Shown: piece by piece, positions 26,801-60,057 of the stretch
Numbering within the stretch: position 1 is the stretch's first letter
How the letters are laid out: the number at the start of each line of letters is the position of its first letter
Source of the DNA: Macrostomum lignano
Lineage: Eukaryota
Direction of reading: 5' to 3'
Assembly: GCA_002269645.1 (NCBI GenBank)
Contig: NIVC01002229.1
Location: 57,927-121,926 of the forward strand
Length of the DNA stretch: 64,000 nt
The notes under the pieces: model-generated
Told to the model about the DNA's origin: nothing
Seen by the model: the letters and a program-made list of their open reading frames with translations, nothing else
Database searches by the model: none
Position numbers and translations under genes: made by a program

Positions 26801-26918
26801 CCGCGGTCAGCCGACCTCGGCCCGAGGTCGTCGGCCCGAGCTAGAACCGCCGTCAACCCGCCGAGCTCGGCCCGATCTCGGCGGACCGAGCTCGGGCCGA
26901 GCTCGCTTTGCCACTGGG
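23866..26918. mobile_element. Non-autonomous TIR DNA transposon, CMC/EnSpm-like (family X, copy 1, 3053 bp)
   Basis: Ends CCCAGTGGCAAAGC...GCTTTGCCACTGGG, with palindromic subterminal motifs (CCGAGCTCGG, CCGACGTCGG) and a 2-bp flank duplication CG/CG. The superfamily is inferred from the CCCAG ends and 2-bp TSD. Confidence 0.75.
25400..26226 (+). mobile_element. Gypsy 3' fragment (decayed integrase tail, PPT, ~310-bp LTR 25917-26226) inside X copy 1
   Basis: Homologous to 58540-59366. PPT GGGGGAGG precedes TGTGGTGAC; AATAAA near 26198; ends ATCACA. Confidence 0.65.
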
Positions 26919-28356
26919 CGATCGGCCATGCTAAAGTCGACCAGCCGACGTCGGCCCGAACTCGGAGAACCTCGGGGTGCCGCGTCGTTAACCAATTACC
27001 CAGTGGCAAAGCCGAGCTCGGTCCGAGCTCGGGCCGACGTCGGCCACTCGGCATCCGATCGGCCATGCTAAAGTCGGCCAGCCGACGTCGGCCCGAACTT
27101 GGGAGAACCTCGGGTGCCGCGCCGTTAACCGATTAAAATTTTTAATCAATTAAGCAGAATTTACCTACGATAATCAATTCGATATAATTAAATAAGAACA
27201 CCGCATAAATATAGATGAATAATTTACACTGAAAAAGTGACTCTTTGCAATAAACAAAAACAACGCAATCATACAGCACTTTTGATCCACCATAAAAGTG
27301 AAATTTGCTTTTTACACATAAAAATTGTGTTTTGGCTCAATTAGTTTGCTCGTTGAGCAAGGCAATTTGAGTTTTATGGATTATTCTCCTTCGAGACGAC
27401 CATGACGTGCATGCGTAATAGGTACGGAAAATTCGAAGTACTAAATTTTAATAAATATATATTTGAGCAATTAACCAGATGGAAGAACATAGCTTCGTTC
27501 GTAAAAATATAAATGAATAAATAACTTTTTTAAAATTTACCTAATGCATAGTTATTGCTCATTTTTTCCCATCTCTACATATAAAAATCAAAACTCTGTG
27601 TGTGTGTGTGTCTGTGTGTGGACAATTTTGATCGCTATGGACTCCCAAACCGCTCAACCAAATTACACCAAACTTTTCACCCACCTAAACTTACTACGGA
27701 GAATGTCTTAGGCTACCTTTTAACTTCCTAGACTCAAGTCTTCCTACCTAAAAGTACAAAAAACTGCTCAAAATGCGCGATTTTTTCACTAAATCCTCCA
27801 TAGCGCCGCTCCACTTCTACAGACCCTCTTCAAATTTGACATGAACAATTTTCAACTATTTTGACACAATCGTGTAAAATTTCGAGTCTCAAAGTCAATC
27901 CTGAACGGCGCTATGCACTTTTAAAGTTAGTCTGCTTTTTTCAGCGAGGCAGCCACCCCAACCTCCGCCCGCCTGCCTCTCTTTCCCGATCTGGGCAAAG
28001 GGTGTGAATAGGTTTTAAAATGCCTAACTTTCGGCTGCCATAGTTTTGCTCCACGTGAAGCGATTGACTTCAAATTTGACACAATTCTTCATTGACTCAT
28101 TCTCTATCTAAATGTAAAGTTTCAACTCTGTAACTCAACCGAAAAAGAAACTGTAAGCATGTGAAGTTTGTCTGCTTTTTCTGTTGTTTGTGCCACTCAC
28201 TCACTCATTCCCCCAGAGCCAGACGAAGGGTCAGGCGATAGGGCTCAATGTACATAGCGAATGTACAGTGTTTTGGAATAGCCTTCTCTGTACCCCCGCG
28301 AGTGGAGAGGCGTGGAGAGGAGAGAGTTTAGCGAGAGATTCAACCACTGTCCTCAA

Positions 28357-30900: not shown

Positions 30901-31374
30901 GTTTCAAAGGATGCAAAGGACATAGGAAGAGGCAGAGGTAGAGGCCAGAGTTTGCCTGACATTCTGCGCAGCACCCCAGCCAACAATAGCAATGTTTGCC
31001 TCCAATCCTAATTTTACACGAATGTGCTCCATTTTATGTCTACCTCTATCCTACCTCTATCTTATCTCTATCTCTATCTCTACCTCCATCTTATCTTCTC
31101 TTTAAATTCATTTGTTTGTGTATGGCCTTAGATTTCAGAATACATGCAAAAGTAGTTCCGGGGATTGGAATTCCCCGGGCTCAAAATCCGCGGGTTTCAA
31201 CAGCTTGTTGATTTGAATATTATTGCTCTCGTGTGGGCCGCGCGGCTCGCCAGGTGATCGTGTCAGACTTGGTTTTATTAATTATTAGCTAATAGTAAAT
31301 TGTAGTCACTGCACGGCTGCTTTTAATGTTAAAATTCATTTAGCTTAGTATTTGTTTTGTTTCAAACCATGTAA

Positions 31375-32610
31375 AACATTAAAGGGCCACCAGGTCAAAC
31401 ATGAAAGTGCCACCATGCCAAACATTAAAGAGCCACCATGCCAAACATAAAAGAGCCACCATGTCGAACATAAAAGAGCCACCATGTCAAACATAAAAGA
31501 GCCACCATGTCGAACATTATTGAGCCACCATGTCGAACATAAAAGAGCCGCCATGTCAAACATAAAAAAGCCACCATGTCAACCATAAAAGAACCACCAC
31601 GTCAAGCATATACATTACTCCATGTCAAACATAAAAGAGCCACCATGTCAAACATTAAAGAGCCACCATGCCAAACATTAAAGAGCCACCATGTCAAACA
31701 TTAAAGAGCCAGCATGTCAAACACTAAAGAGCCAGCATGTCAAACATAAAAGAGCCACCATGTCGAACATTATTGAGCCACCATGTCAGACATTAAAGAG
31801 CCACCATGCCAAACATTAAAGAGCCACCATGTCAAACATTAAAGAGCCAGCATGTCAAACACTAAAGAGCCAGCATGTCAAACATAAAAGAGCCACCATG
31901 TCGAACATTATTGAGCCACCATGTCAGACATTAAAGAGCCACCATGCCAAACATAAAAGAGCCACCATGTCGAACATAAAAGAGCCACCATGTCAAACAT
32001 AAAAGAGCCACCATGTCGAACATTATTGAGCCACCATGTCGAACATAAAAGAGCCACCATGCCAAACATAAAAGAGCCGCCATGTCAAACATAAAAAAGC
32101 CACCATGTCAACCATAAAAGAACCACTACGTCAAGCATATACATTACTCCATGTCAAACATTAAAGAGCCACCATGTCGAAGATTAAAGTGCTACCATGT
32201 CAAACATAAAAGAGCCACCATGTCAAACATTAAAGAGCCACAATGTCAAACACAAAAGAGCACCATGTCAAACATAGAAGAGACACCATGTCGAACAACT
32301 GAGCCACCATGTCAAACATAACAGAGACACCATGTCAAACAACTGAGCCACCATGTCAAACAACTGAGCCACCATGTCAAACATAACAGAGACACCATGT
32401 CAAACATTAAAGAGCCACCATGTCAAACATTAAAGAACCACGATGTCAATCATTAAAGAGCCACTATGTCAAACATATACGTGACTCCATGTCAAACATT
32501 AAAGAGCCACCATGTCAAACATAGAAGAGCCACCATGTCAAACATAGAAGAGACACCATGTGTCCATGTCAAACATAAAAAGAAGTGTCATGCCAAACAA
32601 AATGGAGCCA
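31375..32610. repeat. 23-bp minisatellite (T/A)AAAGAGCCACCATGTCAAACA(T)
   Basis: GAGCCACC at 31453 and 31476. Confidence 0.95.
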
Positions 32611-33311: not shown

Positions 33312-33929
33312 TCCTATATACTAAAAATGAAAATCTTGTATGTTTGTACGCAATCGATTATCTCCAGAATGGCTTAACCGATTTTCATGAGACTTGCACT
33401 GTTCGATCAGAAATTTTCCTGTGACGGTACATGTGTCTTGGCTAACAAATTGCTCGATGCTAAAGGCATTAAATATTCGAAAAACATGCTTTTTTGCAAA
33501 GGTCAAGCAAACTTTTCGACTTGAAATGCATTGTAAGAATGGTAGAGAAAAAACTGACTGGTTGAATTCAGATTCTGAAACAGATTGCATCATAACTGAA
33601 TTGTAACTCCGACTTGAATTGCGTCACAGTATTGAAAATGCAGTGTGGAAGCGTAGCACCAGACTTGATTTAAATTGCGTAACCATATTGTTAACTGATA
33701 CTGACTGACTGAGAAATTGATTATGTCATAACTGCCTCGTGTGATTTACTCTTATGCTTAGAGTTTTGAAACTTATAATTATAAGTGCTAAAATTCATGT
33801 TATCAAAACGATGAGAGCTAGCCTAGAGGTAAACAGACTGAACTGCTAAATGCAGGGACGATGGTTCAAATTTTTAGAGAGTGGAGTTTTTTTAGTTAAA
33901 GCTTTTTACCGCCAAGAAAACTAAAAAAT

Positions 33930-34780
33930 CGTGGAAGCGTCATGAAAAAAAAATCATAAAAGCGTCATGTAAACAATCATAAATGCGTCATATAAACAAT
34001 CATAGAAGTGTCATATAAACAATCATAGAAGCGTCATGTGAAAAGCATAGAAGCGTCATATAAACAATCATAGAAGCGTCATATAAACAATCATAGAAGC
34101 GTCATGTAAAAAATCATAGAAGCGTCATGTAAAAATCATAGAAGCGTCCTGTAAACAATCATAGAAGCGTTATGTAAAAATCATAGAAGCGTCATGTAAA
34201 CATTCATAGAAGCGTCATGTAAAAAGCATAGAAGCGTCATGTAAACAATCATAGAAGCGTCATGTAAAAATCATAAAAGCGTCATGTAAAAATCATAGAA
34301 GCGTCCTGCAGAAATCGTAGAAGCGTCATGATATAATCATAGAAGCGTCATGTAAAAAGCATAGAAGCGTCATGTAAAAATCATAGAAGCGTCATGTAAA
34401 CAATCATAGAAGCGTCATGTAAAAAATCATAGAAGCGTCATGTAAAAAATCATAGAAGCGTCATGTAAACAATCATCGAAGCGTCATCTAAAAAGTCATA
34501 GAAGCGTCATGAAAAAATCATAAGAGCGTCATGAAAAAATCATAGAAGCGTCATGTAAACAATCATAGAAGCGTCATGTAAAAAGCATAGAAGCGTCATG
34601 TAAAAAGCATAGAAGCGTCATGAAAAAATCATAGAAGCGTCATGAAAAAAATCATAGGAGCGTCATGAAAAAATCATAGAAGTGTCATGTAAACAATCAT
34701 AGAAGCGTATGTAAAAAATCATGGAAGCGTCATGTAAAAAATCATGAAAGCGTCATGTAAAAAATTAAGAAGCATCATGG
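33930..34780. repeat. Short array (~0.85 kb) of the same 23-bp satellite, opposite strand
   Basis: ATCATAGAAGCGTCATGTAAA(A/C)A is the reverse complement of the 12440-22825 unit. Confidence 0.95.
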
Positions 34781-35636
34781 TAGAATAAAAGAAGCGTCAT
34801 GTCAGACATGAAGGGTGTCATGTAAAAATTAAATGCAGCTATAATGCTGTGCTGGGGAGAAAAACTGAGACGTAAAGGCTCTCAGAGAATAACTAAGATT
34901 ACGGGGGGGGGGTTTCTGAGATGTCAAAGCAAAATTCAGAAGCTACTTCAAAGTTCATGTACTTTACTCAATTTTTTTATTGCATTCTTTGTTGGCTCGC
35001 CACGGGGGGGGGCGCTGATAGAAGAAGAGTCATGTAAAAAAGAAAAGAAGCACTATGTATACATAAAAGAAAAGTCATGGCGAAGTTAAAAGATTCATTT
35101 GGGAATTGCTACGATGTCAAAGCTTGGTGGAAATCGTTATAGTGCTGTGATTCTTAAAGAAGGAATCACTAAAATGTCAAGGCTTAGGGGAGAAGAATTG
35201 CTGAGATTTCAAGGTTTTAGGTTGGGTTAAAGTTAGGTTTAAGTCAGGTTTGGGTTGAGGGTTAGATTTTAGCGGGTTTCAAGGTTAACAGGGGATTTTT
35301 TAGATTTCAAGGTTTATGGGGGCCATTGCTGACATGTCAAGGCTTACGGGGGGAATAGCTGAGATGTCAAGGCTCACGGGGGTATAAATGAGATTTCAAG
35401 GCTAAAGTCAGAAGCTACATGTAGTTTATTGAAAACTTTTTATTACATTATTTGATGCCTCCTCAGGGGAGGGATCGCTGATAAAAAAGCGTAATGTAAA
35501 AAATAAAAGAAGCTTCATGTCGAAGTTAAGAGATTCATTTGGGAATCCCTACGATGTCGAGGCTTGCAGGGAATCGCTATAATGCTGTAGTAGTGCTATA
35601 ATGACTCTTAGAGAGAATTACTGAAATTTCAATGCT

Positions 35637-36205: not shown

Positions 36206-36315
36206 TCTTAAATGCCCTGCATTATATCCCGGCGGCTCAGGTATTGTATGTATTCAATTATTTTAGTATGCATATAATTGCATGATATAATATTTGATAC
36301 ATTCTCAGCTCTCAC

Positions 36316-36761
36316 CAGCTTATTCATTTTCTCCGTGATGTCCACTGTGCTGAGATCGGGAAACGGGGTGGTCAAGTTCTCCACATTGAACCAGCTCTGG
36401 GCCCACATGTTGCCCAGCAGATGAGCCGGTATATGCCCGGTCTCAGGGAACAGCTCTGCGCCGTACTTGTCCCTCAGCTTCCGACGGACGTAGGCGTGCA
36501 GCTGCTGATAGAAGGGCAGCGCCACGTCCCCACAGCTTGGCCATCATATTCATGAAGTTCTGTCCGGGCCGTGGCTCGTACCAGGACTGCCAGTACTGGG
36601 CGATGTTGCTTATCCGGCCTCGCGGATCATCAAGTTTCCCATGGTCACAAAGTCCGTGTAGTTCTGGCGCATTCGCTTGCCGGAGGCGTCCCGCCAGCCC
36701 TGCCAGAGGGCACGCTTCACCCGCTCCGACTCGTTCGGATCAGCCAGGGCGTCTGTGATGT
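36316..36761 (-). CDS. ACE: Angiotensin-converting enzyme (peptidase M2) family exon, with two compensating 1-nt frameshifts
   Basis: DITDALA...ALWQGWRDASGKRMRQNYTDFV...YWQSWYE...PFYQQLHAYVRRKL...GHIPAHLLGNMWAQSW...PFP. Acceptor CACAG at 36762, donor CTG|GTGAG at 36315. Confidence 0.85.
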
Positions 36762-36914
36762 CTGTGGCGGGCGGGCGGCGGTTCATGGACTGCTAACTGC
36801 ACTGTAGGTGGATTCCTGTCAATTGACTCATCACGGATTTTTTCATAGAAGGAGGAGCGTCTTCGGGGGTGAACGCACGGTATCGCAAACTAGCAAATAA
36901 ACAATCGGTCTCAC

Positions 36915-37005
36915 CTGGATCCAGCTGCATCATTTTGCCAGTGTCTGGGTGGGGCACTTGAGCGGTGCTGTAGATTCCCGACATCTGCGTAGACAGCTGG
37001 CCGTA
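36915..37005 (-). CDS. ACE: ACE-family upstream exon (91 nt)
   Basis: CCGCAG|YGQLSTQMSGIYSTAQVPHPDTGKMMQLDP G|GTGAGA. Resembles ACE [29 protein letters not shown], and phase 1 fits the next exon. Confidence 0.85.
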
Positions 37006-37204
37006 CTGCGGTGCGGGGTTCGGGCGGCAACAGAGAGCTACAGTGAATTAATTACAGTCTAATTTTTATTTTAACCGTCCACTACGAGCTGGTTTTCAAA
37101 TTGCGTTTGTGGGTTTCAAACTTTTCTACGCATCGCGTTGGTCTACAAGGCTGGTTAAATCGTTTTTTTTATAATATGGTACGTATGTCCCCACAATATT
37201 GTTA

Positions 37205-37244
37205 CAAGGACCACTATTACCGTTGTAACTTCTAGTGGTCCTTG
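37205..37244. mobile_element. 40-bp internally deleted TIR element (P-like)
   Basis: TIR CAAGGACCACTA/TAGTGGTCCTTG; flanks TATTGTTA and TATTGTTT (7/8 match). Confidence 0.55.
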
Positions 37245-37323
37245 TATTGTTTTTGTTTTCAAAATCTTAACGACGAAAACGCAGTGCTGGTGCTTTGATT
37301 TCTAATATTTTATTGCACGCTGT

Positions 37324-37560
37324 AATAATAATAAATAATAATTTACGCAATAGCGCAACTATTGCGCGGCGAGTCTGAAGGCTGCGTACGGCTGTTCAGT
37401 CCAAGGACTGGGGGGGGGTCACCACATCCCCTCAATTACCCCAGCTAATGCTGGCACCCATTTTACAGCTGGGTGAACTGAAGCAATGCAGAGTTAAGTG
37501 TCTTGCTCAAGGACACAAATTGTTCCGAGTGATATCGGGAATCGAACCCCCTCGAACGAA
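37324..37560 (-). mobile_element. tRNA-derived CORE-type SINE
   Basis: B-box GGTTCGATTCCCG on the minus strand (37536-37548). CCCATTTTACAGCTGGGTGAACTGAAGCAATGCAGAGTTAAGTGTCTTGCTCAAGGACACA resembles the MIR CORE antisense strand. (ATT)n 3' tail at 37324-37342. Confidence 0.65.
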
Positions 37561-38036
37561 CTCTGTACAATGTGCTAAACTTGCTAATTAGGCTAGATTT
37601 GTTTTACCACCTACAAAGCAGCGGTTTTAACCCGTATCTAAACCGATACCATTCCCTTATGGCAATGTCACTAGAGGTAGACATGCATATATAGCTCTTA
37701 ATTCGTACTCTGAGAACGGGTGTACCTTAAATGGCGCTTATCCACGATAATTACACTAGACATCAGCTAAATCTATTTACATCATCTGTGTAGCATGCGC
37801 AGGCAGGCAGTTCGGGTACCTAGTTTGCACTCCGTGACCCCCACCCAGCCTATCCACTTCCCTCTGCTCGAGCACATCCCAACGCGCACTCAATGAACCG
37901 GAAATCTGTGTTCTACCAGACAATAAATATACAGGCACAGCCACATTCTATTTCTTCACCTTTTTGAGTGGCTAACTAACACTCGCAACAAACAGCTAGA
38001 GTTGCTCGCTACATTGGCGTCACAAGCCAGAACCCA

Positions 38037-41000
38037 ATGGCGCTACTACAGCTACAGCCGCCATCCGCATTCAGCATTAGCGCGGACCCCCCACACCGTC
38101 AGCAAGCGCTGGCAGCATCAGGAATCTCGGACGACGCCCAGAAGCAGGAAATCCTCCTGTATACCGCGGGAAAAGAGGTTGCAGACATCTTTAAAGAGAT
38201 CTCACAGACGCGTCCCGCCACTGACCAGCCGGAGCAGCAAACGCTTGACTCACTCATAGCGGCGCTAACTCAGCACTTTCAAGGACGCGACAATGTGGTG
38301 TTCACCCGGTACCAATTCCGCCAGTGCACGCAGCTAGACGGCGAAGGTATCGACAGCTGGTACAACCGACTGTGCAACGCGGCTGAGGCCTGCCAGTTCG
38401 GAGAGCTGCGCCAGTCCCTCATCCGCGACCAGATCGTCGCCTGCTGCCGCAATGAATCCCTCCGAAAGCGGCTGCTCAACGTGCCCAACATCAGCCTCCC
38501 CGATGCCCTCCAGCTGGCGAGAACAAACGAAGCAGCCAGCCAGCAAGCGGCAATCATGGAGCGCTCGGCAGCCGGACCAGCTGAAGAAGTACATGCGGCA
38601 CGCGACAAGCGCCCCACCAGGCGCCCGCCAGCCAGCCCGGCCGACAAATGCCTGCGGTGCGGAGAGCCCGGCCACCGCACTTGCAACCGGGCCCAAGGCA
38701 AGCGCTGCAGTAACTGCGGCAAGCTGCACCACCTGGCGAAGGCCTGCCTAAGCGGCCGCGCACGCATTAACATGGCAGAGCCTGAGCCAGAGGAACCAGC
38801 AGTGGCGCACCTGGCGGAGGCGGTATTCTCCAGCCTCGACTCCAGCCGCAAAAGCGCCACCTTCAAAGCGGTCATCAACGGCGCGAACGTACCCGTCCTG
38901 ATCGACAGCGGTGCGAGCTGCAACGTGCTCAGCCAGCGGACCCTTCATCTAACGGGAGCACCCGAGCGGGCGCTTCAGCCCACGCACACGAGGGTCTATC
39001 CTCTCGGAGCAGCGAGGCCCCTGACACCCGCTGGCCAGATCACTCTTCACACGAAGATCAACGGCAACTCGGAGAGAGTGCGCTTCATCGTCATCAGAGA
39101 GGACTGCATCACCATCCTAGGCCGCGAGACAAGCACGCAGGTGGGGATGCTGAGGGTCGGACCGCAGGCCGAGACAGCTCTCACCGCCGGACTGACACCA
39201 ACGGTTAACGACCTGTACCTTCCGCAAGACTTGCGACTGTCATCGATCATGAAGGAGTTCAGCGACAGGTTTCAAGGAATCGGTTGCATCAAGGGCGTCT
39301 CAGTCAGCATCCAGCTGAAGGAAGAAGCGGTGCCAGTCTGCCACCCTCCGTCTCGAGTTCCAGTGCATCTTCGAACCGCCGTGGAAAAGGAGCTGAAGGG
39401 CCAGCTAGCAGCCGGCATCCTGGAGCGAGTGACGGGGCCCAGCGCTTGGAGTTCACGCATGGTGGTCGTTCCAAAGGCCTCGCCAGGCGAAATCCGCATC
39501 ACGCAGGACCTGAGGGACGTCAATAAGTACGTCATTCCAGAAAAGCAGCCAATACCGACATTCGAAGAAGTCACCGACGAGATGGCCGGCTCCACCTATT
39601 TCTCCGAACTAGACGTTGCCAAGGCCTTCCACCAGATCGAGGTCAGCGAGGAGTCCCGGCAGCTGCTCACTTTCTCAACGCCTCTGGGCCTGCTCCGCCT
39701 CAAGCGCCTTTGCATGGGATTTACCTCAGCATCTGAAATCCTAGAGCGCGTCATGACATCTATCCTGAGCGGTTTGAGAGGCGTGCGGTGGGTCCATGAC
39801 GATATCATTATCTTCGCCAGCACCATAAAGGAGCACAACGAGAGGCTGCGCAACTGCCTTGACAGGCTGCGCCAACACAACGTGACTCTGAACCCCCGCA
39901 AATGCCGCATTGCAACCCAGCAGGCCGACTTCCTGGCCATGCGCCTCTCGGCGGCCGGAATCCAACCGACCGAGGAAAAGCTGGAAGCTGTGGCCAACTT
40001 CAAGCGACCAGAAAATGCAACGGAGGTGCGGTCCTTTCTCGGACTCGTCACATTCGTAGCCTGCTTCATCCCAAACCTCGCCGACAAAGCGAGGCCACTT
40101 CGAGAGCTGACCAAGAAGAACGTGAAATGGTCGTGGGGTCCACAGCAAGCCTCAGCCTTTCAGACAATCAAGCAGTCGATCGCTCACAGCACCACGCTTG
40201 CCTTCTTCAGCAAGAACTGCGAGACCAGGCTGATCGTCGACGCCAGCCCGACCGGCCTCGGGGCGATCCTCGCCCAGGTGCAACCTGGCGGCCTCACCAG
40301 GCCAATCGCCTACGCCAGCCGCAGCCTCAGTGACACCGAGCAGCGCTACTCGCAAACAGAGAGGGAGGCGCTGGCCGTCAAATTCGGGTGCCTCAAGTTC
40401 CACCACTACCTCAGCGGCTGCCCAAAGTTCAAGGTCATCACCGACCACAAGCCGCTGGTCAGCCTGCTCAGCCCCGGCTCGCGGCCCCCGCCACGGATCG
40501 AGCGCATGGCACTTCGGCTGCAGGATCTCCACTTCGAAGTCACCTACCAGCCGGGCGCAGACAACCCGGCAGATGTCCTGAGCCGCCAGCCACGTCCAAC
40601 ACAGCCGAACAACCAGGGTGAGGATCTCGACACGGCTTACATCGCAATGACAGCACAGGCAGCAGCACCGAACAGCATCAGCCTCGAAACGATCAAGGTT
40701 GCCGCCGCAGGCGACAAGGCGATCCAAGCCGCCGTATCCGGGCTCCGGTCCCGTCGGTGGCAACTCGATAGCCACGACACGCGCAGCCTGCACGGCCTGC
40801 GGCACGAGCTCTCACAACACGACGGACTCCTGCTCAAAGGGCACCAAATCGTCGTTCCTGCTATTATGCGCTACCGCTGCCTGCAGCTGGCGCACCAAGG
40901 CCACCTGGGTGTCCAGAAAACATTGGCACGCCTCCAGACAAAGGTCTGGTGGCCCTCAATGCGGGCCTCCGTCGAGAACTTCGTAAACTCCTGCCTCAGC

Positions 41001-41567
41001 TGCAAGGCCTGCACGAACACAGCCGAATTGAAGGCAGCCCCACTTCAGCCGACTGAGCTGCCGCAGGGGCCGTGGCTAGAGCTGGGCCTGGACTTCCTGG
41101 GACCGATCAGAGGCCACATGCTGCTGGTGTGCACCGACTATTTTTCACGTTTCCCACTGGTACAGACGATGTCGGGGTCGACAGCGGCAGCTCCGGTCAT
41201 CCGAACCCTCCGCCAGTGGTTCAGCACGTTCGGCCAGCCAGTCAAGATCACCACCGACAACGGCCCGCCATTCTCGTCCGCAGAATTCAACGCCTTCCTG
41301 CGCAGCCAGGGCGTCCACCACCATCGGACTACGCCGCTGCATCCCCAAGCCAACGGACTCGTAGAGCGATGCAACCGAGGCCTCAATAAGGCAATCAGAG
41401 CGGCGATTCTGGAAGGCAGCGACTGGCAGGCGGCACTGGACGACTACCTGGCTGCATACCGGCGAACACCGCACGCAGAAACCGGCATGGCCCCAGCCGA
41501 CCTGCTATTCGGCCGACAGCTCAACGACACGATCCCCAGCTTGCTTGCGCCACTCCCGGCCGGTTGA
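38037..41567 (+). CDS. Gag-Pol polyprotein (Zn knuckles, protease, RT, RNase H, integrase)
   Basis: CLRCGEPGH...CSNCGKLHHLAKAC; LIDSGAS; VHDD; VDASPTGLGA, YASRSL, YSQTEREAL, TDHKPL; HQGH...CLSC; LDF, TDNGPPF, NGLVER. Confidence 0.95.
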   Translation: MALLQLQPPSAFSISADPPHRQQALAASGISDDAQKQEILLYTAGKEVADIFKEISQTRPATDQPEQQTLDSLIAALTQHFQGRDNVVFTRYQFRQCTQLDGEGIDSWYNRLCNAAEACQFGELRQSLIRDQIVACCRNESLRKRLLNVPNISLPDALQLARTNEAASQQAAIMERSAAGPAEEVHAARDKRPTRRPPASPADKCLRCGEPGHRTCNRAQGKRCSNCGKLHHLAKACLSGRARINMAEPEPEEPAVAHLAEAVFSSLDSSRKSATFKAVINGANVPVLIDSGASCNVLSQRTLHLTGAPERALQPTHTRVYPLGAARPLTPAGQITLHTKINGNSERVRFIVIREDCITILGRETSTQVGMLRVGPQAETALTAGLTPTVNDLYLPQDLRLSSIMKEFSDRFQGIGCIKGVSVSIQLKEEAVPVCHPPSRVPVHLRTAVEKELKGQLAAGILERVTGPSAWSSRMVVVPKASPGEIRITQDLRDVNKYVIPEKQPIPTFEEVTDEMAGSTYFSELDVAKAFHQIEVSEESRQLLTFSTPLGLLRLKRLCMGFTSASEILERVMTSILSGLRGVRWVHDDIIIFASTIKEHNERLRNCLDRLRQHNVTLNPRKCRIATQQADFLAMRLSAAGIQPTEEKLEAVANFKRPENATEVRSFLGLVTFVACFIPNLADKARPLRELTKKNVKWSWGPQQASAFQTIKQSIAHSTTLAFFSKNCETRLIVDASPTGLGAILAQVQPGGLTRPIAYASRSLSDTEQRYSQTEREALAVKFGCLKFHHYLSGCPKFKVITDHKPLVSLLSPGSRPPPRIERMALRLQDLHFEVTYQPGADNPADVLSRQPRPTQPNNQGEDLDTAYIAMTAQAAAPNSISLETIKVAAAGDKAIQAAVSGLRSRRWQLDSHDTRSLHGLRHELSQHDGLLLKGHQIVVPAIMRYRCLQLAHQGHLGVQKTLARLQTKVWWPSMRASVENFVNSCLSCKACTNTAELKAAPLQPTELPQGPWLELGLDFLGPIRGHMLLVCTDYFSRFPLVQTMSGSTAAAPVIRTLRQWFSTFGQPVKITTDNGPPFSSAEFNAFLRSQGVHHHRTTPLHPQANGLVERCNRGLNKAIRAAILEGSDWQAALDDYLAAYRRTPHAETGMAPADLLFGRQLNDTIPSLLAPLPAG

Positions 41568-42027
41568 CGCCAGGCGACAGACCGTCCGCGGCCACGACTC
41601 CAGGGCGAAGGAGCGGATGAAGGCCTTCGCCGACAGCAAGAGGGGCGCCACCGACCACCAGATCACCGTAGGCGACCTCGTACTCCGCCGGCTCACCAAC
41701 CGCAGCAAGACCGACCCCTTCTTCGAGGCCTCGCCATGGACCGTGACAGAAGTCCGCGGCAACACCCTGCAGCTCCAACGGGCCGGCCAGAGGTGCTCCA
41801 GGCACGCCAGCCACGTCAAGCGAGTCTCCCAGACAGCCGACGAGTGGCCGGGTGACCCCGGAGAACGCGACAGCGAACAGGACAGCCGGCCGGATGAACC
41901 AACCGGCCCGCCCGAGCCAACCGGCAACCAGGACGTCCCACTCGCCAACAGGCCGCATCCCCGACAGGCCAAGGAGACGCCGAAACGCTACGAAGAGGGA
42001 GACCGGCGAAAGGCTCTGGACATCTGA
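41545..42027 (+). CDS. Integrase C-terminal tail, in the +1 frame relative to the main ORF
   Basis: AKERMKAFADSKRGA...ITVGDLVL...PWTVTEVRGN...RHASHVKR, typical of a gypsy integrase tail. Confidence 0.75.
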   Translation: MRHSRPVDARRQTVRGHDSRAKERMKAFADSKRGATDHQITVGDLVLRRLTNRSKTDPFFEASPWTVTEVRGNTLQLQRAGQRCSRHASHVKRVSQTADEWPGDPGERDSEQDSRPDEPTGPPEPTGNQDVPLANRPHPRQAKETPKRYEEGDRRKALDI

Positions 42028-42804
42028 CAGCTGGCGGAACAGCAGCAAGGACTGATCATTGACTCTAATGACTGATACTGATTGCTCGATCGCGCGTAAC
42101 ATGAACCCAACGTTGTACCCAACCCCACCCCGGGTTCCAATCCACCAGACGAGGGATGTAGCATGCGCAGGCAGGCAGTTCGGGTACCTAGTTTGCACTC
42201 CGTGACCCCCACCCAGCCTATCCACTTCCCTCTGCTCGAGCACATCCCAACGCGCACTCAATGAACCGGAAATCTGTGTTCTACCAGACAATAAATATAC
42301 AGGCACAGCCACATTCTATTTCTTCACCTTTTTGAGTGGCTAACTAACACTCGCAACAACCAGCTAGAGTTGCTCGCTACAATCTGTTCCTTTTGTCATT
42401 AGCATTTATTTCGTAATTAAGACATCATGTTCTCTACAAGTTTTACATCTACAAGTTTTCCCGTAATTTTAAAAAAGATAGAGTAATACCAAGTTACCAT
42501 AAAATAAAAGCAACAGTTTTACAGAAAAAAAGAAAATAAATTAAATATATTCCAAAAATGCTGAATACAGGAAAAATGTAGTTAAGGAATTCGAAAAATA
42601 AATTTAAATACATTTTTTACTCAAAATTCATTTTAGATAAATTCCTATTTCCTAAACCTAACCTTAAATTTTCAAAAAAAAAATTAAATTAGCAGAAAAA
42701 TTTGATCCACTAAAATTTTTTTATTCGATAGTTCTACGTGGTAGTATCAATGTGAAACTATTCCAAGTGACGCAAATTAATATCAAGAATTTGCATTCGA
42801 ACTC

Positions 42805-42811
42805 TATAAAA
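42805..42811 (+). promoter_or_regulatory. Putative TATA box
   Basis: TATAAAA ~95 bp upstream of the signal-peptide ATG at 42902. Confidence 0.4.
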
Positions 42812-42901
42812 GAAAGAGAGGTTCAAGGCTGCCGAATCAAATAATTTTCAACGATCACAGATAAGTCTAGTAAAACAAATTCTTGAAGCAAAAAAGCAAC
42901 C

Positions 42902-43548
42902 ATGCAATTCTCAACTCTTGCTCTGCTCCTTCTCGTTGCTGTTTCGAGCGTCGTCGGACGTAAGTCTCTAATCTCTAGATTAGTATGAACCAAATTTTAT
43001 ATGTGTATTTGCATAAAATTTATACCGGGCTTTGCCTTTAGCTACTTTCAATCTACGTCAGTGAGTGCCTACTCGTATTTCCAATGCAAAATTGATATTG
43101 ATTGATAGATTAACTAGTAAACTACTAGGTTAAAGACTTTAGCAAATTATTAACTTTTTACGCAATCATTTACCGTTCGCTTTATAACTTCGCTGTATTT
43201 TGCAAGTACAAACAATAACACAGAGTTCCCATCTTAGTTTAATCTATTTATCTAATAATTCTTTACACCTAGACCGCTATGTTGAATAGGTGTGTGCATT
43301 TATAAAGCAAGCATTCTCCAGCTACTTAGATAGAATGCATCTTAATTTGGTCCGTTATACCAGGTGACAGTTTGACTCGACTCGCTGGCTTAACGCGCAC
43401 TGGTGATCTAGGCGTTGCTGAATTTAGCACACTCGCGCCCCCACCATTAGTGCCGGGTAAGTGGTTATCCTTTTCTACGAAACATGCAAATTAGCTGCCT
43501 AAAAATACACCGAGTCACACTTTTTTGTTCTTTCAGCGCCGTCAGGGG
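42902..43548 (+). CDS. Candidate small secreted-protein gene with micro-exons, truncated by transposon X copy 3
   Basis: Exon 42902-42959 encodes MQFSTLALLLLVAVSSVVG (signal-peptide-like) with a GTAAGT donor. Further candidate exons: 43042-43056/43060, 43273-43289, 43364-43456 (open in phase 1, GTAAGT donor) and 43537 onward. Introns are 82, 74 and 80 nt with pyrimidine-rich acceptors. Confidence 0.55.
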
Positions 43549-44187
43549 CCCAGTGGCAAAGCCGTCGAGGGCCGAGGTCGGCCACTCGGCATCCGATCGG
43601 CCATGCTAAAGTCGGCCAGCCGACGTCGGCCCGAACTCGGGAGAACCGCGCGTACGGTCCAAAATGAATCAATTAAGCAAAATTTTCATACGATAATCAA
43701 TTCGATATGATTAGAAATGAACACTGAATAAATATAAATAAATAATTTACACTGAAAAAGTGACTCTTTGCAATAAACAAAAACAACGCAATCATACAGC
43801 ACTTTTGATCCACCATAAAAGTGAAATTTGCTTTTTACACATAAAAATTGTGTTTTGGCTCAAATAGTTTGCTCATTGAGTTAGGAAGTTTGAGTTTTAT
43901 GGATTATTCTCCTTCGAGACGATCAAGAAGTGCATGCGTAACAGATACGGAAAGTTCAAAGTACTATATTTTAATAAATATATATTTGAGCAATTAACCA
44001 GATGGAAGAACATAGCTTAGTTCGTAAAAATATAAATGAATAAATAACTTTTTTTAAAATTTACGTAGTGCATAGTTATTGCTCATTTTTCCCCTTTGAT
44101 TTGAATATTATTGCTCTCGTGTGGGCCGCGGCCCTCGCCAGGTGGTCAAGTCGGACGTGGTTTTATTAGCTAATAGTAAATTGTAGT
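43549..44187. mobile_element. Family X copy 3, left half
   Basis: Starts CCCAGTGGCAAAGCC, is collinear with copies 1 and 2, and stops at AATTGTAGT. Confidence 0.75.
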
Positions 44188-44713
44188 GGGTGCACGACAA
44201 TTGACTGCCACAATTTGACTGCCACAATTTGACTGCGGACAATTTGACTGCCGAGCAATTTGACTGCCGACAAAATGACTGCGAACAAAATGACTGCGGA
44301 CAAAATGACTGCGGACAAAATGACTGCCGACAAAATGACTGCCGACAATTTGACTGCCGACAAAATGACTGCCAACAAAATGACTGCCGACAAAATGACT
44401 GCGGAAATTTGACTGCCGACAAAATGACTGCCAACAAAATGACTGCCGACAAAATGACTGCGGAAATTTGACTGCCGACAAAATGACTGCGGAAATTTGA
44501 CTGCCGACAAAATGACTGCGGAAATTTGACTGCCGACAAAATGACTGCGGCAATTTGACTGCCGAGCAATTTGACTGCCAGCGAAATGACTGCCGGAAAA
44601 ATGATGCTCCTAAAGTTTAGCACTCTGTCAACCCTTTTAAGTCTATGCATGTAGTGAAATATTGTATTTACGAGCTAGAATGATGCAGAACAGAACACAT
44701 AACTTTTATACAA

Positions 44714-46500
44714 CAAGCTGTAACAGCTGTTGAAACCCGCGGATTTTGAACAGTGGGAAATGGGAATTCCAATCTTAGGAACTATTTTGCATATATTCTA
44801 AAATCTGAAGTTAAACTCAAGCAAAAACTTTTATTATTAGAGTTAAACATAACATAGATTACATTCGTGTAAAATTAGGATTGGAGGCAAACTATTGATA
44901 TTGTTGGCTGGGGTGCGGCGCAGAATGTCAGAAAAACTCTGGCCTCTACTTCTGCCTCTCGATCCCTATGTTCCTTGCATCCTTTGAACCTTCTATCTTC
45001 TCTTCTGTTTTCTCACTTCTCTCTCGTCTCTGCTCTCTCATCTCCCCTCTCTCATCTGTCATCTTTACTCTCTTATACTGGTGTTGTGGCCTGCGCCACA
45101 ATGACCTTCTCATCAACATGCGAACCGCCCGGTCTGGCCTAGCTCAGCGGCTTTGGTTTTAGGCAGCCGGCGTGTGCTCTGATTGGCTGGCTGGGCCGGC
45201 AGACCCTCGCTTTTCTACCCCCCGTTCGTAAAGCCTTACCCAGCGCATGCTTTGATTGGCTGGGCTAGGGTGGGGTGCTCGCGGTTTCTGTTGTGTGAGT
45301 ATTTGCGCTCAGGCCGGTTTGGCCCACTCCCCCATTTTTTAGCATACTATTTATTAGCTGGCTTGGAGCCGGCCGGTGACACGCGGCTTGGTTTTTGCGG
45401 TTAGAGCTACACCAGCAACTGAGTAAGAAAACTATCATAAAAGTACAAAACTGCACGAGCCCAGTAAACTATCGGAACACTTCGTAGCAAGCTAATCCGT
45501 GCCACCCGGCGTCTCCAAGCTGCCAGAACAGTTACTACGGCCAAATAAACTGCGTTGCATGAGTCGGTTTGACCCCGCCCGGTGAGCTTAAATTACGTTT
45601 ATTCGGGTTGCGTTCGCGTTTTTTGGGGCTCTCTGCACGTGTCTTCCCTCCATCCTCGCCGCCTCATCGCTTCACCTACTCACCCCCTAGCTCACCTGCA
45701 CTCTTCGATTGGCTTGGAGTGTCTGTACGCCCCGGCCAATCCTTCACATTCACCTCGTTTCACATTCACCTCGGTGACTCCCGGGCCGGCTCTGAGTGGC
45801 TATCCGCTCCGCTGACCGCGGCAGTACCCCGAGCCTTCCGTGACCGAGGAGTGCCTGTGCGCCCCGGGTCGCATCTCTCCCTCTTCCCCTCGGAGTGGCC
45901 ATCCGCCTCGAGGAGCGCCAGTCGTTCGCCTTCTGTCCATCCCTCCGCCGCGCCCCGGGGCAGTCCCGCACCGAACCCGCTACCCGGGGAAAACAAAACG
46001 ACCGGGCTAGACGAGATCGCAGCCCGCGAGTACAACACTGGTATGTTCTCTCACCTCTCTCCTCTGTACTCTTCTCTTTCCCCTCTTTTGACTCCTCTCT
46101 TTCCTTTCTCCTTTCTTGCCTTTTCTTTTCTTTTCTTCTTTCTTCTATACTCTCTCCCTCTCTTGTCTTTTCTCTTCTCTCTCTGCGCTCTCCTCTCTCC
46201 TCTCATATATCGCGTTCACTCTCTGACTCTCATCTTTGCTCTCTCACCCCCTCTCATCTTTACTCTTCACTCCTGTGTACCTGTCACTTCACTCTTTCCT
46301 TCTGACTCCTCTCTTTCCTTAGTCCTCTTCTTTTCCCTCTTCTATACTCTCTCCCCTTTATTCACTTCTCTGGTCTCTCTGCACTCTGCTCTCTCCGCCT
46401 TCATCTCTCATCTCTCATCTCTCCTTTTATCTCTCTCATCTCTACAATCTCTCCTTTCCCCTGTCTTCTTTTTCAACTTCTCTCTCATCTCTCTCTCCTC
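44714..46500 (-). mobile_element. 3' fragment of the 27572-31207 Helitron family, inside Z
   Basis: 44714-45060 is the reverse complement of 30870-31207, including CAACAGC...CTTG|T, followed by a CT-rich tract. Confidence 0.7.
45082..46037. mobile_element. Solo LTR (956 bp)
   Basis: TGTTGT...ACAACA termini, 4-bp TSD CTGG/CTGG, internal AATAAA near 45543. It interrupts the CT-rich tract. Confidence 0.8.
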
Positions 46501-47353
46501 TTTTGCATAACGAGAATGCGCCTAGCAAGCTTTGCCTCAGTCATTTTGTCGGCAGTCAAATTGCTCGGCAGTCAAATTGCCGCAGTCATTTCGCTGGCAG
46601 TCAAATTGCTCGGCAGTCAAATTGCCGCAGTCATTTTGCTGGCAGTCAAATTGCCGCAGTCATATTGTCGGCAGTCAAATTTCCGCAGTCATTTTGTCGG
46701 CAGTCATTTTGTTGGCAGTCATTTTGTCGGCAGTCAAATTGTCGGCAGTCATTTTGTCCGCAGTCATATTGTCGGCAGTCATTTTGTTGGCAGTCATTTT
46801 GTCGGCAGTCAAATTGCTCGGCAGTCAAATTGTCCGCAGTCAAATTGACCGCAGTAAAATTGTGGCAGTCAAATTGTGGCAGTCAATTGTCGTAGACCCA
46901 ATTGTCACCCGACGGCAGTAGGCTAGGCTGGGAAAAAGATCAAAAAATCTCCAGGCTAGCCTGGGAAAAGATCTTCTGTTGATCTTTCTTGTATACGTTG
47001 CCTGGAAAAAGATCATCTTTGCCTAAATGAATTAAATATATAAGAGCCAATGCAGAAAGAAGCGAAACGCATATTTGCTTGATATTCGCTTAAAATGACA
47101 GAAGTTTAAATCGAATTTTTCTCCTAATTTGAATTGTATATTTCTACGAAACTCTGTTTCGAAAATGTTTGCCAACCCACGCTGGCATGCTATATAGCAA
47201 ATTCTATTATATTGCAAATAGAAGTTGGATTGTACTTTGTGTAGAAGTGAACTATATACTAAGCATACAAAATGTTTCCAAAAAACTATTATTTTAATTG
47301 TTTTGCATAGCAAGCTTAGTAAAAACTATAAAAAACAATTAGAAAGCACTAAC

Positions 47354-48051
47354 CAAGGACGACTTAAGTAGAAGGACGGGAAACCTCGTTTCTTAGAAAG
47401 TTTTTGAAGGCACTTTTTCCCGAAAAAATACACTGCGGAGATAGGAAATTTTCATTTTTTCAGCACAAAAATTGCTATAACTTTTGATAGGAGGCAGATC
47501 CAGTGTTCATCTTTTGATATGTTGTGCCTTTTTTATTGCTCTATCGATATTGATAAAGCTTTTCGTTCAGAAAATCAGGATTCTATGTTAATTTTTTATT
47601 CTACGTATATTTCCTGTATCTAAAAATCACAAAAATGCATGACACAGCTCCAATATTTGGTTTTATGAACCTATTTTATCATCTCTGTTACAAATATTTG
47701 CTACACAGTCAGTTAAGAATGATAAAATAGACTCATAAAACCAAAGAGCCGAGCCGTGGCATTCTAATGTATTTCAAGCACAAGACACGCGAAAATATAC
47801 GTAGAATAAAAAATTAACATAGAATCCTAATTTTCTGAACGAAAAGCTTTATAAATATCGATAGAGCAATAAAAAAGGCACAACATATCAAAAGATGAAC
47901 ACTGGATCTGCCTCCTATCAAACGCAATAACAATTTTTGTGCTGAAAAAATGAAAACTTCCTATCTCCGTAGTGTATTTTTTCGGGAAAAAGTGCCTTCA
48001 AAACTTTTCTAAGAAACGAGGTTTCCCGTCCTTCTACTTAAGTCGTCCTTG
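47354..48051. mobile_element. 698-bp almost fully palindromic MITE (P-like)
   Basis: CAAGGACGACTTAAGTAG...CTACTTAAGTCGTCCTTG; 8-bp TSD GCACTAAC (47346-47353 and 48052-48059); arms ~320 bp. Confidence 0.85.
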
Positions 48052-48469
48052 GCACTAACATTAACAAGCTAGCTACTGACTCTATAAATTGATGCTATCG
48101 TCAATATCAGATATAAATGGCTATATAGTATTTAATTAGTAGCATGCTAGCAATAGACCATATGTCTGGCACTGTGCCACTGTACAACATTCTAAATCCA
48201 GTGCTTTAATGTAAAGAGAGCTATATATAGAGTATTACAATTATAAAGCTATACTATTAATAAATTCTAAAGCCCTGTAGTAGTATAAAGCTATACTACC
48301 ATACATAATAGCTGGATACAGTATTGGAATAGCATAGCTGGATAGGCTGTTAATTTATTTGGGCTTTTATAGCTACAGTTTCTATTATTAAAAAAATGTT
48401 TAGGTGTATAGAAACTACAAGCTATTATATATAGTTGCGGCCCTATATCTCTAAAAACTATATCATAAG

Positions 48470-49530
48470 CCTAGCCCCATCCCTAGTCCTGACCCTAGCC
48501 CTAGATCTACTTAGCCCAGCCTTAACTTTACCAGCCGTAGCCATAGCATTAGACAAAACTCTAACAATAGTCTTGGCCTTGGCACTAGCTTGGCTATAGC
48601 CCTAGCCTAGCCCTACCCTAGCAATAGCCCCAGCTTAGCCCTAGCTTGAGCTCAAGCCCTAGCCTAGCCCCAGCTCAAGCTCTAGCTACACCACAGCCCC
48701 AACAGCCAGTTAGTGTGGTAGCTCAAGCACCAGCCCAGCCCAGCCCTAGCCCTAGCCTACTCTATCCTAGCCCCTACTCTAGCCCTAACCCTAGCCCCAG
48801 CCCTAGCTCCTCCCCTAGCCCTGGTCTTAGCCCTAGTGCTTGCTATCCCTGCCCCAGCTCTGGCCCTATCACTATCCTAGCTACAGCCCCTAGGCCTAGC
48901 CCCAACCCTATGCCCTAGCCCTAGCCCCAGCCCTAGCCCCTGCCCTAGCCCTAGCCCTAGCCCCAGCGCCAGCCCTACCCACCCCTAGCCCCGGCCCTTG
49001 CCCCTGCCCTAGCCCTAGCCCTAGCCCTACCCCACCCCAGCGCCAGCCCTACCCCATCTCAGCGCCAGCCCTACCCCATCCCAGCCCCTGCTCTAGCCCC
49101 AGCCCTACCCCACCCCAGCCCCAGCCCTACCCCACCCTAGCCCCAGCCCTACCCCACTCCAGCCCCAGCCCTACCCCACCCCAGCGCCAGCCCTACCCCA
49201 TTTCAGCCCCAGCCCTAACCCATCTCAGCGCCAGCCCTACCCCACTCCAGCCCCAGCCCTACCCCATCTCAGCGCCAGCCCTACCCCATCTCAGCGCCAG
49301 CCCTACCCCGCCCCAGCCCCAGCCCTACCCCACCCCAGCCCCAGCCCTAACCCATCTCAGCGCCAGCCCTACCCCGCCCCAGCCCCAGCCCTACCCCATC
49401 TCAGCGCCAGCCCTACCCCATCCCAGCCCCTGCTCTAGCCCCTGCCCTAGCCCCAACCCTAGCTCCTGCCCTAGCCTTGGCCCTAGACCCCCCCCCAGCA
49501 CTGGCCCTTTCACTATCCTAGCCCCAACCC
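48470..49530. repeat. C-rich degenerate hexamer (AGCCCT/AGCCCC) array grading into ~22-bp units
   Basis: Direct inspection. Confidence 0.9.
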
Positions 49531-49659
49531 CAGCAGAATTCTACTTCTTTGACTCCTGCACACCTGCACCCCTACACTCCCTGCACCCCGTGCGCTCCAC
49601 ATGTACTGTTTGTATTTTTATGAATGCTTTTTACTTGTTGCTTTAATCATTAATTCCTC

Positions 49660-50280
49660 CCAGGCAGTCCTTCTAGGCTATCCTTCCCAGGCAGCATTCC
49701 CAGGCTATCCTTCCGATTCAACCTCTCCTAGGCTGCTACCCTTGCCAGACAGCCCTACTAGGCTACACCCTCCTATTTAACCCCTCAGGCTTCCTCCTTT
49801 TCTAATTTCTACCCCTCCCAGGCTACCCTTCCCAGGCTACCCTTCCCAGGCTACCCTTCCCAGGCTACCCTTCCCAGGCTACCCTTCCCAGGCTACCCTT
49901 CCCAGGCTACCTTTCCCAGGCTACCCTTCCCAGGCTACCCTTCCCAGGCTACCTTTCCCAGGCTACCCTTCCCAGGCTACCTTTCCCAGGCTACCCTTCC
50001 CAGGCTCTCTCTCAGGCAATCCTTCCTGGCTACCCTTCCCAGGCAGCCCTCCCATTCTACCCCTCCCAGGCTACCCTTCCCAGGCTACCTTTCCTACTCT
50101 ACCCCTCCCAGGCTACCTTTCCTACTCTACCCCTCCCAGGCAGCCCTTCCAGTCTACCCCTCCCAGGCAGCCCTTCCAGTCTACCCCTCCCAGGCAGCCC
50201 TTCCAGGCTACTCCTTCCAGTCTACCCCTCCTAGGCAGCCCTTCCAGGCTACCCCTTTCATGGCAACCACTTCCAGGCTA
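49660..50280. repeat. 14-bp minisatellite CAGGCTACCCTTCC
   Basis: GGCTAC at 49821 and 49835. Confidence 0.93.
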
Positions 50281-57556: not shown

Positions 57557-60057
57557 AATTGTAGTCACTGCACGGCTGTTTTTTTAACGTTAAAATTAAT
57601 TTAGCTTAGTAGTTGTTTTTTTACACCTTCTTTTGAAGAATTTAAATGTTCTGACGAAATTCCAGAGACATAATTTAGTCTTATACAGTTAAGCCTAAAC
57701 TAACTGAACTATATAACTACTTGGATTACTACACTGTATTGCAATGTAAACTTGCTGTTTTGGGTTTAATGGTTTCTGCTTACAATTTTTAAACAGGCGT
57801 ATGAATATGTTTTAATAATAATAATTAGACATTGCGGTTGCGATGGCAATTCACCAACTATTTTCAAAATGGCAATCAAGTAGTTATCTATCCCTAGGAG
57901 TTGAAAGTGGATAAATATCTACAAAAATCATGTTTTCATAATAAAATGTTGAAAAGTATAGGATTGCAATATGAGCTACCATAGGCCTAACTTAACTGTA
58001 GGAATGATATCTAGATTAGGTCATAAATCATGTGATTTTGGAAAGTCTAGGGCCTAAAATGGCCTAAAGCTAGGATTTTTGTTTCTTATGATATTATGAT
58101 CCCTACTATATTATTTAGTAGCTCCTTATTTTTTAAGAATTTGTTAATGGCAGTTTCATGCCATCTATGAGTTATATTCTATCAGTTAATTTAGGGCAGC
58201 ATTTATCTTTAGCCAGGATATAATGCCAATTTTGCATACCATAGCAAGCAGTTTAATGAAATTTTGCTATATAGACTAGATTTTTTACTTTTTTAGATAG
58301 ATTCATAGTATTCATATTATACTATGTTATGTTTCTTATGACTTTTTTGTATAACTATAGTAAACTTATTTAAATGTTATAGGTTTTACTTTATTTTTGC
58401 ACTATAGATTAGATCTTCATGCTATTTTTATATACTAGGGCCCTATGCCACATTTGGCATCAGTTTTACACTATAGGCCAGATTTGTGTATCATTTTGTG
58501 TTTTCCATCTATGAATTTGACTCCATTTGACCCAAACCCCCTTGATGTTCTAGATACAACACTCTGAGAAAATGGGATGAGATTCTCCCAAGATTACAAG
58601 CAATGCAGAAGCAGCAGCACGATGCCTATGCCCATGACTGTCGCATTGAGATGGGTGACGCAGTCGTCAAGAGGGACTTTGCTGCTGACGGCAGCTGGAA
58701 GCCTGCTGTTGTGACCGACTGCTGTGGGGCTGCGTCTTTCTTTTGCCAGTTTGAGGATGGTCGAGAGGTCCATTGGCACATTGATCAAGTGTGCAAGCCG
58801 CTGGAGCCTGCGACGCCTTCGAAAGTCGAGCAGCCGCCATGTGCCGAGGTGCCTGACAATCAACCGGAGGCCCCTGCGGAGACGCCTGGCCAGGCGCCAG
58901 AGTTGAGCTGCTCCGCGGCGCCACTTCGACATTCGACCAGGGCGAGAGCTGAACCTGACCAGCTGCGCTACCAGTGACTATGGACTGTTCCTCTATGGAC
59001 TGTGAACGTCTTTTATTCTCGTTTTTATCCAACGCTTAATCAATTTGTGGGGAGTGTGGTGACTTGGCTGGGCAAATTGTTGTTTGTTTTGTTAGCTTGT
59101 TTTTACTCCGTGTTTTGAGGTGGTTTTTTACCAGTTTCGCTGCGTGCTCCCTTCTGCGATATTTCGCTGTACATTCTTATGTGCGCTCTGCATTCTGGCC
59201 GCTCTTGCTTTCCACCCTTAAGCCTCTTACACCCAATGTATCGTGCTCAATATTTACAATATAAATTGCAGTCGCTTTCCTCGTATCAAGCGTCTCGTTC
59301 TACAATCTAAAGTGAAGTCTTTACAGTTTATAATGTTAAATAATGCTCAACCAAATCCGTATCACAACCCTTAACCCAACCTCTGTTTTCAACTGTTTAG
59401 CAACTTTTTCTCTTTGTTTTCTTGCTTATTGGTTGAAAAGTTAATCTTGTATCATTAATAGCATTTGATAATACACTAGTGTGCTTGTGGTGGATTTACT
59501 GTTGCGGTTTTCTTTTAATTCAATTATTTTAAGTTCTTCTAAATCGTTCTTATTTCACAATCATTTAATCCTGGACATGGTTGGTTGTTGGTTGTGTATA
59601 TTTGTGCAGAGCTATAGATCGAGGAACTGAGTCTGGTGGATATCTAATATATCTTACGTATCTAATTCCGAGGGGAAATCAATTAAAATAGTTAAACTAG
59701 GCTCATATACATTACCACTGCAATACACTAACATATGCTAGGAATGACTTGGGACTTTTAAATCGATTCGTGTCATGTCGTTTTCCCATTCACCTTTTCT
59801 TTTTCATGTAATACCGAATTGTACAGAACAACAAGTGATAGAAAGTGAAAGTGGCACTACATGTAGTCAATCTGTAAGAAGCAATATAAGCTTTATAAAA
59901 GCTGAATACAAAGTATAGTGCAAAGCTACTCGGCATTACCGCGGTCAGCCGACCTCGGCCCGAGGTCGTCGGCCCGAGCTAGAACCGCCGTCAACCCGCC
60001 GAGCTCGGCCCGATCTCGGCGGGCCGAGCTCGGGCCGAGCGCGGCTTTGCCACTGGG
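57557..60057. mobile_element. Family X right half (includes gypsy 3' fragment)
   Basis: Collinear with 24490-26918; ends GCTTTGCCACTGGG at 60057. Confidence 0.8.
58603..58977 (+). pseudogene. Captured gypsy integrase C-terminal fragment (124-aa ORF), followed by PPT and LTR 59055-59366
   Basis: QKQQHD...IEMGDAVVKRDF...WKPAVV...GAAS...WHIDQ...LRHSTRARAEPDQL resembles gypsy/Mag integrase tails. Confidence 0.7.

Follow-up and report, generated by a model that had tools for sequence, protein, structure and literature searches.

A candidate small secreted-peptide gene, possibly interrupted by a repeat element, in repeat-rich DNA

Does a short unique stretch of DNA, lying between a retrotransposon and another repeat, hold the beginning of a gene that automatic annotation has missed, or does it just resemble one? 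A sequence-only reading of the window, by which we mean the whole 64,000-nt stretch of DNA analysed here, had proposed at 42805-43560 an unannotated micro-exon gene for a small secreted protein that was cut by a transposon. Our own best explanation is a tentative one, to which we give a probability of about 0.45: the locus may hold the 5' part of a gene, live or recently dead, that codes for a small secreted peptide, is restricted to its lineage and was interrupted by the repeat element we call X. The candidate lies within 1167 bp (42382-43548) that are single-copy in the window. All positions of the proposed gene, from the TATA box and the ATG to the donors, the acceptors, the micro-exon of 15 or 19 nt and the 93-nt exon, are present in the sequence. 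The features of the locus are the following.

42805-42812, + strand: TATA box TATAAAAG, 97 nt upstream of the ATG
42837-42839, + strand: TCA, a possible start site, presumed from its position about 33 nt downstream of the TATA box
42902-42959, + strand: putative exon 1 of 58 nt, with the ATG at 42902; 19 signal-peptide-like codons (MQFSTLALLLLVAVSSVVG) plus 1 nt, so that it ends in phase 1
42960, + strand: donor of exon 1, GAC/GTAAGT
42960-43363, + strand: intron 1 of the best-supported model, 404 nt, GC about 0.32; the alternative to it, also on the + strand, would be an 82-nt intron, the micro-exon and a 307-nt intron
43041, + strand: acceptor cctttag, the next one after the donor of exon 1
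43042-43056, + strand: doubtful symmetric micro-exon of 15 nt, which would encode PTFNL; donor GTCAGT
43042-43060, + strand: longer variant of the micro-exon, 19 nt; donor GTGAGT
43273-43289, + strand: 17-nt piece
43364-43456, + strand: putative 93-nt exon, phase 1-1, encoding RDSLTRLAGLTRTGDLGVAEFSTLAPPPLVP; acceptor at 43363, donor CGG/GTAAGT
43457-43536, + strand: putative last intron, 80 nt; acceptor ttttttgttctttcag (ttctttcag) at 43536
43537-43548, + strand: possible start of exon 4, 12 nt (…APSG), ahead of repeat X
43549-44184, + strand: repeat element X, with the 5' terminus CCCAGTGGCAAAGC

The model that we regard as best supported by these signals joins exon 1 to the 93-nt exon across the 404-nt intron and then, across the 80-nt intron, to the beginning of a further exon. 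Transcription would be driven by the TATA promoter at 42805, one of ten matches to TATAWAAR on the + strand of the window and the sole one within 42000-44000, and would start near 42839. Exon 1 would then provide a cleavable signal peptide and end in phase 1, the 93-nt exon and the 80-nt intron would follow, and a further exon would begin at 43537. If the micro-exon is skipped, exon 1 and the 93-nt exon are in frame with each other (...VVG-RDSLTRL...), and the phases agree across all junctions. The frame used is the only one of the + strand that is open through the 93-nt exon, an openness with a chance probability of roughly one third. All proposed introns are of phase 1, the first one placed directly after the signal peptide; a phase-1 intron right behind the signal peptide is usual in secreted-protein genes. 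The locus has what any coding gene needs at its start, namely a promoter, a start codon and a frame that stays open over consensus splice junctions, and the gene-like 5' structure that had been described (TATA box, signal-peptide exon, phase-1 introns and strong sites at the larger exons) is borne out. The translations given for it are reproduced exactly as well, including the ...QPLC* that ends the path through the 19-nt and 17-nt pieces. A different acceptor at 43330, giving a 127-nt exon, was dropped because it is out of phase with exon 1 in every combination tried.

We scanned both strands of the window for first exons, defined as an ATG with a signal-peptide-like open reading frame of 15-35 codons, a strong donor and a subsequent acceptor. 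Exon 1 is the sole exon in the window that combines an ATG, a signal-peptide-like sequence and a strong donor. The hydropathy of its peptide (Kyte-Doolittle mean over nine residues) peaks at 2.9, and by a crude hydrophobicity rule it qualifies as a signal peptide, with the nine-residue core LALLLLVAV, G at -1 and V at -3. The predicted peptides from the locus include some of the RDSLTRLAGLTR type, and the segment encoded by the 93-nt exon is predicted to be cysteine-free and proline-rich and is probably disordered. From such signals we infer a candidate gene that would be transcribed and spliced, whose product would be secreted and whose 3' part would have been disrupted.

The composition of the DNA sets the two larger exons apart. 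GC is 0.52 in exon 1 and 0.57 in the 93-nt exon, against 0.30-0.36 in the proposed introns and 0.29-0.31 in the flanks of exon 1. The hexamer GTAAGT occurs seven times in 128 kb of strand (both strands of the window). The 1.17-kb unique stretch has only two GC islands, and each of them carries one of the seven hexamers precisely at its 3' edge. An arrangement of this kind might also have come about by chance: an ATG, a hydrophobic stretch, GTAAGT hexamers and pyrimidine-rich AG sites could have fallen together in two GC-richer patches of AT-rich spacer, with nothing transcribed or spliced. We consider this a possible reading, at odds well short of even, and the placement of the two hexamers and the mutually consistent phases of the junctions argue against it. 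To put figures on it, the pattern was sought in 1500 shuffled windows in which composition was kept in 100-nt blocks, with each further element added to those before it.

First exon and acceptor: 22.5% of shuffles
In addition, a strong donor closing an in-phase exon of 60 nt or more: 1.3%
In addition, an acceptor 50-150 nt further on: 0.87%
In addition, a TATA box 40-150 nt upstream: 0 of 1500

A first exon is cheap, being found in more than a fifth of the shuffles, and even with a second exon the pattern turns up in about 1%. If many windows were scanned, some such patterns would be expected. The full combination appears in none of the 1500, which speaks against chance. These figures overstate the case, shuffles being an imperfect proxy for natural spacer DNA, and since the criteria were set after the locus had been seen, the true significance is lower than they suggest. 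The arrangement is clearly unusual. Codon composition leans the other way: GC at third codon positions of the candidate is 43-50% (codons counted by hand) and thus not raised, which favours chance, and the exons of a nearby gene relic look GC-richer at third positions, judged by eye and without a count.

The splice sites differ in quality along the locus. They were scored with a rough donor/acceptor weight matrix drawn from general knowledge, and the scores below are approximate, the matrix not being trained on this species.

Donor 42960: 3.6 bits
Acceptor 43364: 3.5 bits
Donor 43457: 7.4 bits, a level reached by three GT sites in the window
Acceptor 43537: 4.8 bits, within the top 2% of the window's AG sites
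Micro-exon acceptor 43042: 1.25 bits
Micro-exon donor 43057 (GTCAGT): -1.3 bits
Micro-exon donor 43061 (GTGAGT): 1.1 bits
Acceptor of the 17-nt piece, 43273: -0.45 bits

Scores are good at all four sites of the larger exons and poor at the sites of the micro-exon, as they are at the acceptor of the 17-nt piece. The strong splice sites claimed for the locus are therefore real at the larger exons (3.5-7.4 bits) and missing at the micro-exon (1.25, -1.3 and 1.1 bits), a weakness that fits the chance reading. The micro-exon also has a GC content of 0.33, which is intron-like. At 15 nt it would be optional, the frame being kept whether it was included or not. The 19-nt variant shifts the frame and runs into an immediate stop with either downstream acceptor. 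Judged on this single exon, the 15-nt length is symmetric, and the 19-nt and 17-nt lengths are not and lead to stops.

The micro-exon was the reason for comparing the locus with the micro-exon genes (MEGs) of schistosomes. In these genes 10-20 micro-exons, separated by long introns, form the bulk of the coding sequence, and the genes belong to paralogous families; the micro-exons measure 6-81 bp, and mostly 15 bp, the commonest length (bioRxiv 10.1101/2023.06.21.545858). The candidate shares with them a predicted N-terminal signal peptide, a single possible exon of 15 nt, a length divisible by three, and the absence of homology outside the lineage. In contrast to MEGs, its coding sequence would lie mostly in the 58-nt and 93-nt exons, and it has neither paralogues in the window nor similarity to MEG proteins; in protein searches and in the window we found no sequence relatives and no paralogous family. 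At most one 15-nt and one 17-nt candidate micro-exon are available, where MEGs have 10-20. A true micro-exon gene system like that of schistosomes, generating variable secreted proteins or a regulated premature stop by the skipping of micro-exons or a change of donor at them, would be in keeping with the 15-nt symmetric piece and its tandem donors 4 nt apart, and with a signal peptide combined with a lack of homologues, as in MEGs. It is nevertheless highly improbable here, given that only one or two micro-exons are possible, that of the 166 or more coding nt they would contribute 15, that their splice sites are weak, that a paralogue array is absent, and that the 19-nt variant merely runs into stops. 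The candidate falls outside the schistosome MEG family, and the locus provides no example of micro-exon genes beyond schistosomes.

The label "micro-exon gene" consequently has to be given up: there is room for only a single symmetric micro-exon of 15 nt, which has weak splice sites, carries no GC signal and can be dispensed with by the frame. The same holds for the likeness to schistosome MEGs, in which 10-20 micro-exons stand against one doubtful one here (bioRxiv 10.1101/2023.06.21.545858). The accompanying idea of a splice switch, or of NMD, is pure conjecture. We regard it as improbable that the locus is a live orphan gene of a non-schistosome invertebrate, coding for a small secreted peptide, with an optional 15-nt micro-exon and a premature-stop switch based on the tandem donors, the C-terminus and 3' UTR of which were recently replaced by a transposon.

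If the locus is the 5' part of a secreted-peptide gene, its other end has to be sought at the border with X. The claim that the repeat begins exactly at 43549, 12 nt past a strong acceptor, proved correct. Copies of X at 26999-27570 (88% identity) and about 23865-24464 (81%) begin with the same CCCAGTGGCAAAGC as at 43549, so that three copies share a precise terminus next to unrelated left flanks, as transposable elements do. Inverted copies of this terminus are found at 26905 and 60044. The right side of X is overlain by a foldback-like element (~44185-46900), behind which 46901-47353 matches nothing else in the window; an attempt to recover the gene's original 3' end by removing X and the foldback-like element failed, with neither a clear 3' end of X nor a clear target-site duplication.

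With X in place the open reading frame continues for 39 codons into the repeat and reaches a TGA at 43665-43667, which gives a predicted product of 93 or 98 aa, and AATAAA signals lie inside X at 43727 and 43737. If the last intron is retained, the predicted product has 62 aa. According to our best explanation, the further exon would be interrupted by X after 12 nt, and two products at best could now arise: the chimera of 93 or 98 aa, ending at the TGA at 43665 within X and using the poly(A) signals of X, or the 62-aa intron-retention product. The original C-terminus would most likely have been lost. The locus resembles transposon-terminated genes in that a repeat terminus lies 12 nt into a putative exon, the frame is open for 39 codons into X, and X supplies a stop and AATAAA; set against these genes, the insertion in the candidate could equally be intronic.

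This last point bears on another reading, which accepts the exons as real and does not see in them a small gene that was cut. They might be a duplicated 5' relic, with an intact copy of the gene elsewhere in the genome, or the start of a larger gene, in which case later exons would lie beyond the transposons, X would be intronic and the acceptor at 43536 would be a coincidence. Only 12 nt separate that acceptor from X, and an exon or an intron is compatible with them. Genes in repeat-rich regions often have transposon-filled introns, which suits the larger-gene version, and an adjacent sequence related to ACE (peptidase M2) is just such a relic as the other version postulates. Even so we find this reading unlikely: with 4.8 bits the acceptor at 43536 is a strong one, its distance of 80 nt is typical, and no in-phase downstream exon with coding similarity was found in the window.

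Among known kinds of gene, the cut secreted-peptide gene that we favour would be closest to the orphan secreted-peptide genes of invertebrates. Like these, the candidate has a TATA promoter, a short first exon that is little more than the signal peptide and a phase-1 intron directly after it, and the predicted product is short, cysteine-free, of low complexity and without detectable homologues. It departs from them in that it lacks its 3' end or has a repeat in place of it, and in its location amid satellites and transposons.

Relatives of the locus were sought at the protein and the DNA level. Among 5.8 billion proteins, none had a word set in common with the conceptual product of 59 aa, and all six frames of 42382-43560 gave no protein match at E <= 0.01. 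An exhaustive phmmer search of 1.84 billion representatives with the exon-3 read-through peptide returned only two marginal matches; one was a repeat protein aligned to the intronic tail only, the other a bacterial repeat protein, and both were rejected as spurious. Paralogues of the locus were absent from the window (tblastn and blastn), exact-pattern scans of metagenome and genome collections with exon 3 and the X core gave no DNA match, and Rfam and tRNA scans returned nothing. We found no literature on the peptide. A homologue or an allele with an empty site was likewise not found in the protein and DNA collections. That homologues, paralogues and related DNA all failed to appear in these collections and in the window is what the chance reading predicts. 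The negative results are weak in both directions, however, because the collections seem not to include this organism: relatives of the ACE fragment reach at most 62% identity in alignments over most of the query, and the open reading frame of the neighbouring retrotransposon has no exact record.

Were the candidate transcribed, it would be one more lineage-specific small secreted-peptide gene missed by automatic annotation and a clean case of a transposon replacing the 3' end of a gene, which would be useful for annotating the genome and would not introduce a new principle. Were it not, the locus would demonstrate how convincing a gene-like pattern can be in repeat-rich spacer DNA. And if the live orphan gene described above were true after all, a young gene would have been caught while being remodelled by mobile DNA.

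The surroundings of the locus weigh on all of these readings. The main features of the window outside the candidate are as follows.

24-1209, 6172-10655, 12399-22825, 31366-32561, 33922-34802 and 48730-50280: satellites
22826-23777: assembly gap of 952 N
~36256-37003, - strand: fragment of an ACE-like (peptidase M2) gene, Pfam E = 7.9e-28
37789-42381, + strand: Ty3/gypsy LTR retrotransposon, 520 bp upstream of the ATG
~44185-46900: foldback-like element with inverted arms at 44187-44604 and 46538-46900
~47355-48053: MITE about 700 bp long, whose terminal inverted repeats exceed 200 nt and are 96% complementary

The window is eukaryotic DNA, probably that of an invertebrate animal, and is dominated by repeats. 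The region is heterochromatin-like, which is in favour of chance; such surroundings of satellites, transposons and a decayed gene are a poor place for a live gene and count against our best explanation. The gypsy element has one gag-pol-type open reading frame of 1176 codons with Pfam protease, reverse transcriptase, RNase H and integrase domains. Its two 225-bp LTRs (TG...CA) are 100% identical and it is flanked by the target-site duplication ATCTG, from which its insertion appears to be recent. Once this insertion is discounted, the ACE fragment lies about 1.3 kb upstream of the candidate, head-to-head with it on the opposite strand. The fragment has kept an intron of about 147 nt, so short introns do occur in this genome, and it carries an in-frame stop and two 1-nt frameshifts; judged from these lesions, it is a decaying gene relic. 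Its 5' exons were not detectable in 36880-37800 or 42382-43560. Since gene remnants accumulate here, as the ACE relic illustrates, the candidate could be a relic too. We also considered the candidate as the missing signal-peptide end of the ACE relic and rejected this, given the opposite strand and the lack of ACE similarity in 42382-43560 and 36880-37800.

Several minor observations concern the repeats themselves. The satellite units measure 45 nt (24-1209), 14 nt (6172-10655) and 23 nt (12399-22825); the 23-nt array extends over 10.4 kb up to the assembly gap, and an inverted copy of its unit is present at 33922-34802. The 5' region of the X family is complex (23780-24560, 26800-27570 and 59840-60135), the CCCAGTGGCAAAGC terminus being found in both orientations beside the same CGATCGGCCATGCTAAAG... 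segment, an arrangement suggestive of self-insertions nested in one another or of an end that can invert or form a hairpin. The arms of the foldback-like element are composed of 15-nt subrepeats (TGACTGCCGACAAAA), with a possible 5-bp duplication, ATTGT, at its flanks. The MITE has an 8-bp target-site duplication, GCACTAAC, and is hAT-like in the length of this duplication.

A tRNA-derived, SINE-like sequence occupies ~37440-37640 on the minus strand; in it the core gtccttgagcaagacacttaac comes after a GGTTCGATTCCC box, and a literature search on this core found nothing. The core gtccttgagcaagacacttaac also occurs in three contigs of bacterial assemblies, which are perhaps contaminating animal DNA, and BLAST of the window against these loci gave one weak match (L003), 79% over 70 nt. 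Finally, open reading frames at 62310-63114 on the minus strand contain a ...HPAYSPDIAIADFHLF... motif, for which Pfam reports only a weak HTH_33, and which, reading it by eye, we take to be the remnant of a Tc1/mariner-type transposase.
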